A stretch of 63,717 bases of DNA, filler included, from Parasitella parasitica NRRL 2501 (lineage: Eukaryota > Fungi > Mucoromycota), in the NCBI GenBank assembly GCA_025201805.1. It is 7 parts of 7 records of this genome, joined end to end, with 100 filler letters (N's around TTAATTAATTAA, not from the genome) between each part and the next. Parts side by side here need not be neighbours in the genome. Positions count along the whole stretch, not along the records: positions 48,272 to 51,956 come from MU619367.1; positions 52,057 to 58,563 come from MU619479.1; 5 more parts are not named here. The stretch is one strand, 5' to 3'. The notes under the pieces were generated by a model that was not told the DNA's origin, did no database searches, and saw only the letters and a list, made by a program, of their open reading frames with translations. The position numbers and the translations under genes are program-made. Every line of letters begins with the position of its first letter. Position 1 is the stretch's first letter. This document shows, in pieces, positions 51,614 through 58,563 of the stretch.

Positions 51614-52252
51614 ACTTTTCTTTCTCCTAACCAATTTTTTACCTAATTTGGAACATTCACTTTTTGTAAGAAATTGTATAACACTTCATCCATCCATCTC
51701 GATAAAAGCTTCATCATTGCATCCTTCGAGAAAATTAGCTCACCTACTTCGTTGCCTTCAGATTCTCTTTTTTCTGGCTTGAAACGGCCTATTTCGTCTC
51801 GATCTCCACCTTTATTTGCGTTTGATCTCGTACAACAAATAAAGTCCAAAAGATCCTCAACAACATTTGGAGATCCCAAGCCCGCTCCTCCTGCCCAAAT
51901 GAATCTATCAACACCAGATATGATTGATTTCGGTGTTACTGCCCTCCCGTCTGCCTNNNNNNNNNNNNNNNNNNNNNNNNNNNNNNNNNNNNNNNNNNNN
52001 TTAATTAATTAANNNNNNNNNNNNNNNNNNNNNNNNNNNNNNNNNNNNNNNNNNNNAATTCTTTCAAATTTCAAGTATTCCTTATTTTTTTTAGTTTTTT
52101 TTTTTTTTCCATCCATCGTATCAAGGTGTTCATACAAAATAAATAAAAAGCTAAAGTTTTCAATCAAATATTGTCTTTTTTCTCTTGTTTCCATTTTATT
52201 TTTTAAACTTATCTACTTTTTTCCTTTTAGCATGAATTTCGCTTTCTTCAGA

Positions 52253-53116
52253 ATGAACAACAATGAAGACGAAGTCTTTCAATTGACTCATAATAGAAGA
52301 ATGCAAATTCAAACTTATAGAAATTTCAGCGAGCAAACCGCATTGCACTATTGGTGTTGTGTTTGCTTGAAAAACCTCTATCCCGAAGAGGTTCACTACA
52401 ATAAAAATTTGAGGATAGACAACAACCTCCCAGCATATAGATGGGGGTATACTGCACAAACTAACGCAAAAGGGCATGCCGTTACATGCAGATCGCACAA
52501 GGAGACGAGCATTATCAAAGATACTGAATTCATTTTTCCTGGAAAAGAATTGGAGATAACAAAGCAACTAAACTATAGAGAATTATCCATGTTATCGCCC
52601 ATCAAGTTAATGTCAAAAATGACAAGAAAAAAATCTGGCTTTCATGGAAGACTTGGCCACTATGAACTTTCTGGAGACGTTTATATTAAATTCAACTACG
52701 AATTTGCGTCGATGCTTTATCAAGGATCATCAAGCTTATTCTTTATAGACAACGCGAACCGTTTAGGTGGGTGCATTTTCTTTTTTAAAAAAAAAAAAAA
52801 AAAAAAAAGTTTATTTCCTTGAAACAACTAACTTGCATTAAAAGCTATAAACATGCAAGTTGTACGAGCAGCCTGGAAAGAACTTACTGATCAGAACCCC
52901 TTACTCAAACAATACAGACTGCCACACATCGAGTCTGCCCTTGTGAAACATCACGTATCAACATATCCAGAACGGGTCGGGCTTAGAGATAATACACATG
53001 GAGAGTATTCTGATTACATCAACCGCGACAATAATTGGGAAAATAAAATGGCTCGCCCATTAGCTGATGGAACAGCAGGAATTGCTGAAGATGGAGAAGA
53101 GTAATGAGACGTTTTA

Positions 53117-53149
<33 letters not shown>

Positions 53150-53732
53150 CTTTTGTTAGTAACGAAGCTGCTAGGTTTTTAAGGCTACTGATTGGATCAG
53201 ACACCAACAATATAAAAGTAACCTACAGCCACCCCTTGTTGCTATGTTTATTATTTCCATACTTGTTCACGAATGGAAAAGGGTTCTACTCTTTAAAAAA
53301 GCGTAGCGAAAAACTATTCCAACATTCCTACATACCAAAAGAAACGGATTTGGCAAGTTACAACAATATAACACTGAGAGAATTTTCAAAGATGTTGCTA
53401 TTAGGCAAAGACAGACGTTTTGCAAAAGATCCTTCTTTTATTTTTATTCTTCTAGACATTATCGAAAAGCAAACGATATTTTCATATAACCGTAGAGTAA
53501 TACAACTATATGGAACCACCAACTACAAGGCCAAAGATATCCGTGTATTCGATGTGAATAGAGGTAAGACAGTGATCAATACAAGAAAAACATCTGTAGT
53601 TCCTTTAACATTACGATCGTCAACATCGTACAAAAAAAAAATGTATCTCGATTTGGCCACAATGTTTGACAATTACGGAGAACCAACTGTAAGTTTTCGT
53701 AAAAACAACATTGCTGTATAAACATGACATGA

Positions 53733-53812
<80 letters not shown>

Positions 53813-55685
53813 TATTCCTTACCATTACCTGCGCTGATTTCAGTTCTGAATACAAAGCTGCCACTAATTGCGAAAAACCTTGGGAAGATCCTGTTCTTTT
53901 TTCCCTTCACTTTAAACGAAAATTCCAACATTTTTTCCACAGGAGCATCTTAAAGGTAATTCACAACAACGATCTTAAAATTACTGCATTATAACCTTAT
54001 TATATACTTTAGAACTTTCCAACTATTGTGGGACCAATTAAGCATTACGCTTGGGTACTTGAAGTGCAAGATAGAGGTTCCCCACATATCCATGCCATTT
54101 TATGGACTGAGCGAAAAGCGGAAACATTGCTAGCTGATAACGTTGTAATTGCAACGTTACCTTCAATACACGACCCTTACTACGAAACAGTTGCTCGTTT
54201 ACAAACACATACCTGTTCAAATTACTGTCTCAGAGGTAATATCAGTAGCCAACACAGTAAAAAATCATGTCGATTCGGTTTTCCTTTTGACGAATGTGAT
54301 ACACCTCACAAAGAAGGTAATCGTTTCAAATATAAACGTGGTAGAAACGCAGCATTTATTAACAGCTATAATCCACTCCTTTTGCGTATACTGGAGGTAA
54401 TTGCAACTATAATGTAACTCTATTCATTATTCTCATATATTTATCCCAGACACATATGGACATGCAATTAAACGCTGGCAGACAAGCTCTTTATTATCTC
54501 TGCAAATACATGACAAAACTAGACAATCAAACAAAAGTCTTTATGAACACAGCCAACAACAATATGGATCTTATAGATGTTCATTTAAAAACTAGAGTTA
54601 TTGGAGCAGTGGAAGCAGTATACCATATAATGGGATGGCATATTAAAAGGTTTTCAACAAAAGTCATTTATATCAATACAAACATGCCGAATTATGATCG
54701 CCGCCAACTGATTGACACAATAATGGAAGTAGACGATGAAGAGGAAAACATATTTGTGCCTTCACAAATCGAGAAATATGAAAAACGAAACAAATGTCTT
54801 GACTTTTTAACACTTCCACAATACTACACATACTATAGAATAATTTATAAAAAACCACCATCTTGGGAAGAAGGATACGAAGAGTTTGATTATGTGTCTG
54901 AAGATGATGATGATGCAGATGAAGAAGAAGAATCTCAAGGTGAGTTTTTAGTCACAAGACATTTATTCATTTCCCTGCGACTAATACTATTCAAGACTCG
55001 AATGCACAGCAAAGTAGATACAGACAACGAAATGCTACAGTTAGTATTGCTTCACTTGAAGATGCTATGGGAGATACAGTCCAACGCCGATTACCAGTAA
55101 CAATCAGAGACGGCTATGGCAAAACATGGACACTTCGCAAAAGCAAAGCAATCCCACTTTACCGCACAAGAAAACTTACAGTATCACATGGCGAAGCATT
55201 TTTTTATCAACAAATAGTGCTATACTACCCATCTACCAAATTTGATGACCTCAAAGCAATCAATGAAAACTGGCTAGGTAAATGCTAAAATCTTACAATT
55301 TATAATGTCATTACAAAAATTATATAATGACACTTTAACATATATATATATATAGATGTGTATAAACGCTTAGTCGCAACAAATAATATGCAACCAAGAA
55401 TACCAGAAAGTTTTTATTCAGGGGATCTCTCAACAAATGAAGATGATGCGCTAGTTAACGATTTAGATATACAACATATGCTTGAATCATTGAATATAAT
55501 ACAATACGAAATCTTTTCTAATTTGCTAATCAATATAAGGCATGGAACACCGTCAATAGTCCTCGGAGGAGCTGGAACAGGAAAATCATATCTGTTGAAA
55601 CTTTTATATTTACATTTTAAAAAAGAAGGATACAAGGTAAACACTTTTGAACAAACAAAAAAAAAAAAAACTAACNNNNNNNNNN

Positions 55686-55777
<92 letters not shown>

Positions 55778-56231
55778 TAAAGAAATTAGCTCCAACTGGT
55801 ATTGCAGCATACAACATTGGTGGTGCAACCTATCACTCTTTTTTTGGAATAGATACAGCTACTTCCTCTGTAAACTTGACAAAACTCGATATGGAAGTTA
55901 AAGACCCTAGGCCACTGTTATTATTAATTGATGAATGCTCAATGATATCGGAGCACATGGTGAATACCATTGATATCTCGTTAAGGACAGCTACTAATTG
56001 TTCAAACATATTCGGTAACATCCCTGTTGTGTTTTTTGGAGACTTTGGACAATTAAGACCAATAGAATCAAATGCCACTTCATTTTTTAAAAGCTTCCTA
56101 TACTCCAATTGTTTTACATACAAACTCTTAGTAAACCAAAGACAGGTAGATGAGCAGTACATCAAAATTTTGAACAAAGTCAGAGAAAACAACATTGACA
56201 AAGAAGTTTACAAGTATGTCCACCATCATAG

Positions 56232-56321
<90 letters not shown>

Positions 56322-57011
56322 AAATCTCCCAATTACAAGAACTGATCCAATTTTTCCAACAGCTTTATAAAATCAAAAACTGTCAAAATTGAATCTATTC
56401 CTGTAACATCTCTTAAACTATTTATGACTAACGAGGAAGTAAAAAGGGAAAATTTTGTCATGCTTCGAAGAATATTTATACAACAAAATATTACAATTCG
56501 CTTATTCCAATCAATGGACTACGTCTCTGGTGAAGAAAAAAGAAAAGCAAAAACGCTCCTTGACAAAACACTCCTTGTAGAAAAACTAGAAATTGGCATT
56601 GGTTGTAGAGTAATGCTTTTACAAAATCTCAATATTCAAAACGGCTGGGTAAACGGTACATTAGCTGAAATAACCAACATCAGGGGAGACTACATAGAAA
56701 TTAAGCGTAATGAGGATGGTATGACTTGCAAAGTCGAGAGAATAACTAGAACTATACCAGATACATCATACTCAAGAACACAATTCCCCTTGAGACTCGC
56801 TTTTGCTTCAACTATTGCAAAAGTACAAAGCTTAACACTACAATCTGTTGCTATCTCTGCTAAATCATTTGATACCCATGGTACGTTATACGTAGCAATG
56901 TCAAGAGTAAAAACTGCAAACGATGTCCAATTTTTTGGTTACGATCCCGCACGCCACACAATCTCAATTACAGCAGATAAAGAATGCTTAGATTTTATCA
57001 AAGATCAATAG
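52253..57011 (+). mobile_element. Helentron/Helitron2-type Rep-helicase (HUH Y2 endonuclease plus Pif1 helicase), about 9 introns
   Basis: Rep motifs PT|IFLTITCAD, EVQDRGSPHIHAILW (GSPH, Helentron-type) and YLCKYMTK. Pif1 motifs GGAGTGKS, LAPTGIAAYNIGGATYHS, IDECSM, FGDFGQLRP, RTQFPLRLAFASTI and LYVAMSRV. Confidence 0.95.
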
Positions 57012-57086
57012 CAACAGAAATTCACAATCAATATTCATTTTTATTTTTACAACTCAAACATTTTCTCGCTACAGCGCAATACAAAT

Positions 57087-57929
57087 TTATACCAAAGAAA
57101 GAGCAAAATGACTAAAACCGCTATTAAAAAGGATAATTGACGTTAGTAAAAAACAAAAACCCAAAACTTTGCTTGAAATAAACATACCTTTCCACCATTT
57201 CTTCCGTATACCAATGTGCATTGTCTGGCAACATATAAACAGCCGCACCGTGAAAGTAAATCTCTTCCAAATTAATACAATCTTTTGCTTTCTTTATACC
57301 GACGGGAACAAAAAGGCGCAGCGTGTTGAAGCCAAGAAAGACCACCTTTTTTGGCTTTTTCAGAGTTATCTCTATCTCGACAGCCGTTGCACAATCCTTC
57401 TGGTACTGAGCAGAAGTGTTTCGGAAACTCCTATCAGGGATTACTGTTGTAAATCCCCAATTTTTGTATTCCATTACCTCCATGAAATTATCTTTTGTAG
57501 GAACAAAATCCAACAAACCTACACCATCAAATATTACATAAATAAATTAAATTACAATACACAGTTTTTCATACCGGCTTCAACCAAATTCCTCCAAAAT
57601 TCGGTTCTTTGCTGGAAATAATACGTAGAATATCGTTTTGATGGATGCGACATTTGGACAAATAGCACATCCAAATTATCAGGAAAGAAGCCTTCCATTG
57701 TTGCATTTCCGATTTCCTTCAACACTCTGGAGCATTCCCTGCTACTTTCATTTATCCTAGGCTTTGATAATGATTGTTTCACAGTAACACATAAAGACTT
57801 CATTCCTTCCAGCATCTTGTTCACACCGTCTTCAATGTTAATCAATCTTCCATAAACATCTGGTGTTTCCTCGACCTTAACGGCGTCGGCGGAATGTTTG
57901 CTTTCATTATCACTATCTCGATCTGACAT
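57087..57929 (-). CDS. Divergent MUG/TDG-family (UDG superfamily) DNA-glycosylase-fold protein, about 239 aa, 3 exons
   Basis: Exons 57929-57575, 57518-57188 and 57120-57087 (GT-AG introns, 720 nt in frame). NLDVLFV, FWRNLVEAGL, WGFTTVIPDR, KPKKVVFLG and VYMLP appear in the same order as TDG/MUG NLDIVIIG, FWKCLFMSGL, IGFTNMVER, QPRIAVFNG and CYVMP. Confidence 0.72.
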
Positions 57930-58120
57930 TTCAGTATAATTTTCTTCCTCCTCTATCCTTCAACCCCTCAATTATATATACAGAAAACACATTTGAAATT
58001 TTTAATGACCACAATTAAAAGACAATTAACCAACTTTTTTTTCTTTTCTTTATTTTTCCTTCTTATTCTCTGTTCTTCTGTCGCATTGAATAAAAAGTAC
58101 AAAGTTTTTTTTTTAAAAAT

Positions 58121-58563
58121 ATGGCATCCATACATGAAATAACAACAGGTGTCATACATTCATCTGAGATCCAACGAATACTTGATCAGCCTACAATCCA
58201 TGAAAACTTTCAAGTTGTCGTCTTTGTACAAAGCGAGTAAAGAAAATAAGACCAATATTTATCACATGCATAGACAACATTTAACAATGGTAAATTTTCT
58301 ATAGAGTAAGACTTTTTACCATCACGCAAACAACTTGCGTTGAAAGAGTAATTCAGCCAATAACCAGTACATGGTATTGGGCAACCATAGTGACCATCTT
58401 ACGCAACAAATATGATCATACATCATATTCCTTGTCGATTTCAATCAGCAATCTTGAACCTACACCCCCCCTTATGTGCCGCTTACGTACAATCGTTCCC
58501 AAAAAGGAATTAGTCGTCGACATCAATGATCCCAAACTATTAAAACGTCTACATAACATGGAA
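58121..58563 (+). CDS. Hypothetical protein divergent from the glycosylase-like gene, cut by gap
   Basis: Start context AAAATATGG. Exon MASIHEITT..VFVQS joins through a putative intron 58237-58304 (GTAAAG...CTATAG) to a frame that stays open to the gap. Confidence 0.45.

Follow-up and report, generated by a model that had tools for sequence, protein, structure and literature searches.

The 6.5-kb contig analyzed here comes from the fungus Parasitella parasitica NRRL 2501 (record MU619479.1 of assembly GCA_025201805.1) and occupies positions 52057-58563 of the window, that is, of the whole stretch of 63,717 nucleotides (nt) in which seven parts of the genome are joined by filler; all positions given below count along the window. 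It probably bears a transcribed and intact RepHel gene that converges with an orphan gene, the product of which would contain a very divergent MUG/TDG-like domain at residues ~80-239. The large gene is an intact Helitron-type RepHel, consisting of an HUH/Y1 nuclease and a Pif1-like helicase of superfamily 1B (SF1B). RepHel proteins are the enzymes of rolling-circle "peel-and-paste" transposition. The product of the small gene quite likely has a domain of the uracil-DNA glycosylase (UDG) type that resembles family 2, to which MUG and TDG belong. Originally the two genes were predicted, from the sequence alone, to form a Helentron-type transposon carrying a MUG/TDG-like DNA glycosylase gene; that the Helitron does mobilize the small gene appears doubtful.

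The RepHel gene and its transcripts

Spliced models were handled exon by exon in the searches, and the junctions of RepHel were checked by coordinates. The RepHel model (Table 1) is free of internal stops, and each of its nine introns is bounded by GT and AG. In its Rep part, the Pfam families Helitron_like_N and REP_ORF2-G2P were matched in the open reading frames (ORFs) 53104-53721 and 54028-54417, Helitron_like_N with E values of 1.1e-5 and 1.6e-4 (both under the curated cut-off) and REP_ORF2-G2P with 27.9 bits against a cut-off of 27.8. In its helicase part, the Pfam families PIF1 (61.8 bits) and Pif1_2B (29.8 bits) were matched in the ORFs 55777-56208 and 56424-57011. The HxH motif (PHIHAIL) and the Tyr motif (LYYLCKYMTK) of Rep, together with the Walker A motif (GGAGTGKS), the DE box (LLIDECS) and later motifs of the helicase, are all readable in the ORF translations, the Pif1-like SF1B helicase being fused downstream of Rep within one open gene. 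The open ten-exon model, the Pfam domains and the catalytic motifs thus bear out the intact Rep-Pif1 gene with its stop at 57011 that had been predicted.

Evidence of transcription was obtained from sequencing run X7, which behaves as an RNA-type run and was treated as RNA because its contigs skip GT..AG introns. An X7 contig of 3549 nt joins exon 9 to exon 10, in which it ends. In run X7 and in a second one, X8, RNA contigs pass from ...GAAGTTTACAA straight into position 56363, so that intron 9 has been spliced out. The lone aligner mismatch at this junction corresponds to an ACAA/ACAG ambiguity, the true intron being 56214-56362. Since the 3549-nt contig could not have been assembled through the homopolymer runs at which DNA contigs break, it suggests that the other homopolymer introns of RepHel are removed too. 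Another X7 contig (56761-57197) has a depth figure equal to that of the RepHel contigs and ends 15 nt past an AATAAA signal, which delimits the 3' untranslated region (3'UTR). Antisense to the small gene, this region extends across its exon 3 and intron 2 into the end of its exon 2.

Several further observations concern the RepHel transcript. The antisense overlap between the 3' ends of the two genes amounts to ~110 nt or more (57087-57197), and the AATAAA of RepHel falls within the second intron of the small gene. The two transcripts converge and might pair into double-stranded RNA. An alternative GT..AG joint within exon 10 (56706>56761) was found in one minor X7 contig, and its use would give a minor isoform that lacks 18 residues of the C-terminal helicase part. 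The RNA-type contig of X8, a run labelled as organism C, shows exons 9 and 10 joined in the same way and has no difference over ~190 nt (56363-56556); it derives either from a very close relative or from a mislabelled or contaminated sample.

Homopolymers fill most of five of the nine RepHel introns, namely those at 52767-52844 (A22), 53101-53159 (A30), 53689-53811 (T64), 55637-55776 (A90+) and 56214-56362 (A88), and public DNA contigs break at them. The introns of the two neighbouring genes, unlike those of RepHel, hold no long homopolymers. The assembly gap at 55676-55685 falls within intron 8, and positions 2-52 of the PIF1 model lie in exon 8 and positions 55-213 in exon 9, contiguous across that intron. 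Because the gap is intronic, both flanks are in phase 0 and the PIF1 match is contiguous, no coding sequence of RepHel has been lost and the reading frame is independent of the length of the gap.

A candidate MUG/TDG-like domain in the small gene

The small gene lies on the minus strand and comprises 720 nt (239 codons plus stop); its stop at 57087 faces the RepHel stop at 57011 tail to tail at a distance of 75 bp. The coordinates, frame and splice sites agree with the three-exon, in-frame gene at 57929-57087 of the original prediction, the introns being predicted, and the five motifs listed for its product (NLDVLFV, FWRNLVEAGL, GFTTVIPDR, KPKKVVFLG and VYMLP) are all present in the same order. 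One RNA contig with a low depth figure covers 57607-57875 of exon 1 only, and the gene is probably expressed.

For comparison with its product, a hidden Markov model (HMM) of MUG was built from 18 sequences, including E. coli mug, 12 diverse MUGs from plasmid records (35-58% identical to E. coli mug) and five enterobacterial proteins; the plasmid MUGs were chosen since the protein search and the genome scan gave only MUG relatives of at least 69% identity. With all filters off, exon 2 scored 8.6 bits over HMM positions 64-140 (i-Evalue 8.7e-5 at Z=1, as a single comparison), and this score was reached by none of 30,000 composition-preserving shuffles of the exon (maximum 8.0). Exon 1 was placed at HMM positions 8-43, collinear with exon 2 (p 0.016), so that its residues 85-118 correspond to motif 1 and the FW..AG helix of MUG. 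The combined p of the two exons by Fisher's method was ~8e-6. A profile-profile comparison was also made for each exon by hhalign against the 18-sequence alignment: exon 2 was aligned to template positions 83-157 (E 1.9e-4, probability 48%) and exon 1 to positions 10-46.

As controls, the two exons in reverse and seven further coding pieces from the window gave 0.3 bits or less, and an eighth piece was below reporting. An HMM of UNG (family 1), built likewise, gave -1.9 and -1.8 bits for the two exons, values that a third of the shuffles match, and genuine UNGs scored only -1.3 bits on the MUG HMM. Given these UNG and window-ORF controls, the MUG signal is specific to family 2. A language-model search of 7.7 million clusters was also performed, the value of which lies in its being unbiased, because the MUG hypothesis had been chosen after the sequence was read. 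For exon 2 it returned PF03167 UDG clusters (0.92; 17 of the 30 matches), and its best cluster with residues 72-118 of exon 1, at a weak score of 0.82, bears the name uracil-DNA glycosylase family. The collinear HMM and hhalign matches, the negative result with UNG and this independent lead are consistent with the predicted MUG/TDG-like product, and support it weakly but specifically.

A number of results weigh against this resemblance. The profile scores are small and that of exon 1 is marginal. Pfam and NCBIfam were blank for the exons even at E values up to 10, PF03167 being matched at that level by neither exon, each of which holds part of the domain only; phmmer against the PDB and BLASTP of the exons against E. 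coli MUG were blank as well. When a MUG profile made from enterobacteria only was used, hhalign returned only short, non-collinear matches for the exons. The AlphaFold single-sequence model of exon 2 alone had a pLDDT of 37 and was unusable, and no RNA contig spans either intron of the gene, RNA cover being limited to 57607-57875. The G-I-N-P-G of MUG motif 1 is aligned to Q-M-S-(H)-P-S, with Ser in the Asn column in both alignments, and the motif 2 loop LPNPSG, which in MUG enters the DNA, is aligned to LPDNAH, in which Leu-Pro is kept and Ser-Gly is not. Furthermore, homologues of the small gene were not found.

The gene is a lineage-restricted orphan, and because of this no alignment of its product could be built. 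PHROGs contained no family for the exons, scans of metagenome and viral contigs revealed no relative of the gene, and phmmer with exon 2 against 1.84 billion representative proteins found no true relative. The sole match of that last search, P0001, is a BspA-type leucine-rich-repeat protein and was judged spurious.

These blank searches would agree with a different explanation, namely that the product has no glycosylase fold and that the motif order arose by chance in an orphan protein of another fold or in a non-coding ORF. The best profile score of merely 8.6 bits and the selection of the hypothesis after the sequence was read point the same way, as do the language-model matches, which share 165 features (just below the mark of 170) at a score level of 0.9 that shuffled proteins reach in 4-10% of cases. 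We nevertheless regard this explanation as improbable: two profile methods give the same collinear alignment, at a score none of the shuffles attained, UNG and the control ORFs are without signal, and the unbiased search gave the UDG superfamily for two separate pieces. A non-coding origin is unlikely because the gene has ORFs of 125 and 130 codons in DNA of 33% G+C, canonical in-frame splice sites and a TACTAAC branch site.

If the product has a MUG/TDG-like domain, it would nonetheless not be a canonical member of family 2, and we would describe it as working like MUG/TDG without filing it there. Its likeness to E. coli MUG, human TDG and fungal Thp1 (UDG superfamily, family 2) lies in the size of the domain (~160 residues) and in the order and spacing of the blocks, i.e. 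a strand with motif 1, an FW....AG helix, a G-[VF]-T strand, a P....LG strand and a (V/Y)-x-LP-[ND] loop. It differs from them in having an extra acidic N-terminal part of ~80 residues, in falling below every curated threshold without detectable relatives, and in the replacement of GINPG by QMS(H)PS and of PNPSG by PDNAH. The Asn of GINPG positions the attacking water, and the UDG families vary at this catalytic position, which is Asp, Asn, Glu or, in family 5, Ala. An alteration at this position does not prove inactivity. A canonical glycosylase is not supported, since the catalytic Asn is replaced and the curated models are silent.

The fold, activity and substrate of the product are inferred. 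The protein would bind duplex DNA as MUG and TDG do, a pyrimidine that is damaged or mispaired (U or T facing G, or C in modified form) would be flipped into a pocket, and the glycosidic bond would then be cut, or the lesion merely held. With Ser-His in place of the water-positioning Asn, the protein may use a non-canonical chemistry or may be a lesion-binding pseudo-enzyme.

The small gene as cargo or as neighbour

Three genes are present on the 6.5-kb contig, and their features are listed in Table 1. The third, which was absent from the original prediction, is divergent from the small gene. Its RNA contig starts at 58070 and confirms the GT..AG joint of its intron; neither Pfam nor PHROGs has a family that matches it, and a search for homologues was empty.

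Table 1. Features of the three genes on the contig, in window coordinates
Feature	Position	Strand	Details
RepHel gene	52232-57011	+	10 exons, 3987 nt, 1328 codons + stop, by exon-by-exon phase accounting
RepHel exons 1-5	52232-52766, 52845-53100, 53160-53688, 53812-53955, 54013-54396	+	
RepHel exons 6-10	54450-54939, 54996-55277, 55356-55636, 55777-56213, 56363-57011	+	
RepHel intron 8	55637-55776	+	GTAAAC..AAAAAG, 82% A, A-run of at least 90, phase 0 on both sides
RepHel intron 9	56214-56362	+	149 nt, A-run of 88, removed in RNA
Alternative in-frame intron in RepHel exon 10	56707-56760	+	54 nt, GT..AG joint 56706>56761, one minor X7 contig
RepHel 3'UTR	57012-57197	+	~186 nt, AATAAA at 57177-57182; X7 contig end
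Small gene exon 1	57929-57575	-	118 codons + 1 base; ORF and splice sites
Small gene intron 1	57574-57519	-	56 nt, GT..AG
Small gene exon 2	57518-57188	-	2 bases + 109 codons + 2 bases
Small gene intron 2	57187-57121	-	67 nt, GTATGT..TACTAAC..AG
Small gene exon 3	57120-57087	-	1 base + 10 codons + TAA
Divergent intergenic region	57930-58120	.	191 bp, from ATG 57929 (-) to ATG 58121 (+)
Third gene	58121-58563 (piece edge)	+	exon 1 58121-58236, intron 58237-58304 (68 nt), exon 2 from 58305, open to the edge

Two DNA assemblies were compared with the stretch 56330-58563, which takes in only the 3' third of the element, and in each of them one contig matched it at a likeness of at least 85%. The depth figures of the matching contigs were close to those of unrelated ones (132 versus 143 and 145; 32.8 versus 33.7), depth not being a copy number. 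Judged over 56330-58563, the stretch looks single-copy, and with one matching contig per assembly the multiple copies with shared ends that mark a Helitron were not found there. No 5'-TC or CTRR-3' ends, subterminal hairpin or asymmetric terminal inverted repeats were found in the 6.5-kb piece, and neither was a G+C-rich hairpin or any terminal inverted repeat; only 175 nt are present upstream of the RepHel ATG, and the ends may lie off the piece. An element 3' end with a hairpin was also not found in 57012-57197, and the long-range repeats in the piece are all homopolymers. Neither further copies of the element nor sequences related to it turned up in metagenome and viral scans. One relative of the C-terminal exon of RepHel was recovered (47% identity, on a 928-nt contig), and no gene like the small gene is present within 490 nt downstream of it.

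The distribution of the stretch among sequencing runs was also recorded. At least half of the words of 56330-58563 are held by seven runs and all of them by six, which may include the source assembly. Among the 15 runs listed for organism A, five hold all sampled words, X7 holds 0.63 of them and nine hold next to none, and organism B is represented by one run of each kind. This pattern could mean that the entire segment of three genes is polymorphic for presence and absence; it may also be an index artefact, because two pairs of runs from the same samples disagree.

It is possible, though in our view unlikely, that the Helitron includes the small gene, and perhaps the third one, and takes it along when it moves. 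The arrangement argues for this, since only 75 bp lie between the two stops and the RepHel transcript terminates within the small gene, a spacing and overlap in which it is hard to see where an independent 3' end of the element, hairpin included, could fit. Both neighbours of RepHel are orphans and not conserved host genes, and a precedent is given by the fungal Helitron1 and Helitron2 elements that carry TET/JBP, a DNA-demethylation enzyme whose reaction products are substrates of TDG (PMC12730594). Against it stand the apparent single copy, with no sign of recent movement, the unseen termini and terminal inverted repeats, and the lack of such a gene downstream of the only RepHel relative recovered. 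Moreover, the small gene shares its divergent region of 191 bp with the third gene, the RNA depth figures of both neighbours are ~270 times below that of RepHel (depth being a poor measure), and the homopolymers are confined to RepHel introns. With no second copy, no termini, an apparent single copy and a relative that lacks the gene, carriage of the glycosylase gene by the transposon, as originally predicted, is not established.

A nearly even chance is given to the explanation that RepHel merely adjoins the small gene, the latter being a fast-evolving host gene paired divergently with the third gene. The RepHel gene might then be an old immobile insertion, or a domesticated single-copy gene whose 3' end has been compacted against its neighbour. 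The apparent single copy is in keeping with this explanation, and so are the nine introns, the abundant spliced RNA and the alternative in-frame isoform of RepHel, as in an ordinary cellular gene. The divergent pair have similarly low RNA depth figures, and the homopolymers of 22 to 90 bases in five of the nine RepHel introns, versus none in the neighbours, hint at separate histories. However, the absence of any relative among the 1.84 billion representative proteins does not fit a conserved host gene, overlapping 3' ends are hard to obtain by simple insertion beside a host gene, and RepHel has kept all of its catalytic motifs. A domesticated or immobile RepHel beside fast-evolving host genes fits the facts about as well as the carriage of the small gene by the Helitron.

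Should the small gene be carried after all, its product might repair deaminated cytosine in single-stranded intermediates, undo C-to-T silencing damage or remove oxidized 5-methylcytosine, or make abasic sites, roles that are put forward tentatively. The protein would then reverse cytosine deamination in the single-stranded intermediates, or reverse C-to-T damage like that of repeat-induced point mutation (RIP) or methylation induced premeiotically (MIP), or complete a TET-type demethylation. The full scenario, in which a rolling-circle transposon is protected or reactivated by a MUG/TDG-like protein that it encodes itself and whose active site is altered, seems to us still less likely than carriage as such.

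Comparison with known elements and significance

Autonomous Helitron elements were reportedly described by Kapitonov and Jurka in 2001. Helentrons are Rep-Hel-APE elements of animals and some protists, and Helitrons are known to pick up host genes. The contig has the Rep and helicase domains in common with Helentrons; it differs from them in that an AP-endonuclease (apurinic/apyrimidinic endonuclease) domain is absent and RepHel stops at 57011, shortly past the helicase core. The Helentron-type assignment of the original prediction is therefore not retained, as no ORF matched an AP-endonuclease domain of Pfam and the ends of an element are not visible. Helitron1 elements have 5'-TC and CTRR-3' ends with a 3' hairpin, and Helitron2 elements have two hairpins and asymmetric terminal inverted repeats (Bao and Jurka 2013, PMC3627910). 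With both types the gene described here shares a multi-exon RepHel with an HUH motif, a Tyr motif and a Pif1-like helicase with its full set of motifs. The difference from both is that no ends were found in the 6.5-kb piece and that the stretch is apparently single-copy; because the ends were not found, assignment to Helitron1 or Helitron2 is impossible.

Since the products of TET are acted on by TDG, an element with a TDG-like cargo would encode the enzyme that follows in that pathway. In fungi, TET/JBP dioxygenases are carried by Helitrons and by DNA transposons of other kinds, and these Helitrons are a precedent for a rolling-circle element with an enzyme for modified cytosine (PMC12730594). 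In the TET/JBP-carrying families the cargo lies within defined ends and several copies exist, whereas neither was seen here and no TET/JBP gene is present on the piece. In a literature search, no published case of a Helitron that carries a gene of the UDG superfamily, or lies beside one, came to light.

If the link between the two genes is not real, the contig still holds an intact, apparently single-copy and well-transcribed RepHel, which is either an active element or a domesticated gene, together with a UDG-like orphan missed by current domain libraries. If the link is real, it would represent a transposon that uses base-excision chemistry for its own upkeep or for escape from silencing, and would provide enzymology with a natural MUG/TDG variant in which Ser-His replaces the catalytic Asn. 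Were it carried, the small gene would add a new class to the cargo of Helitrons, a repair enzyme turned into a device against silencing.

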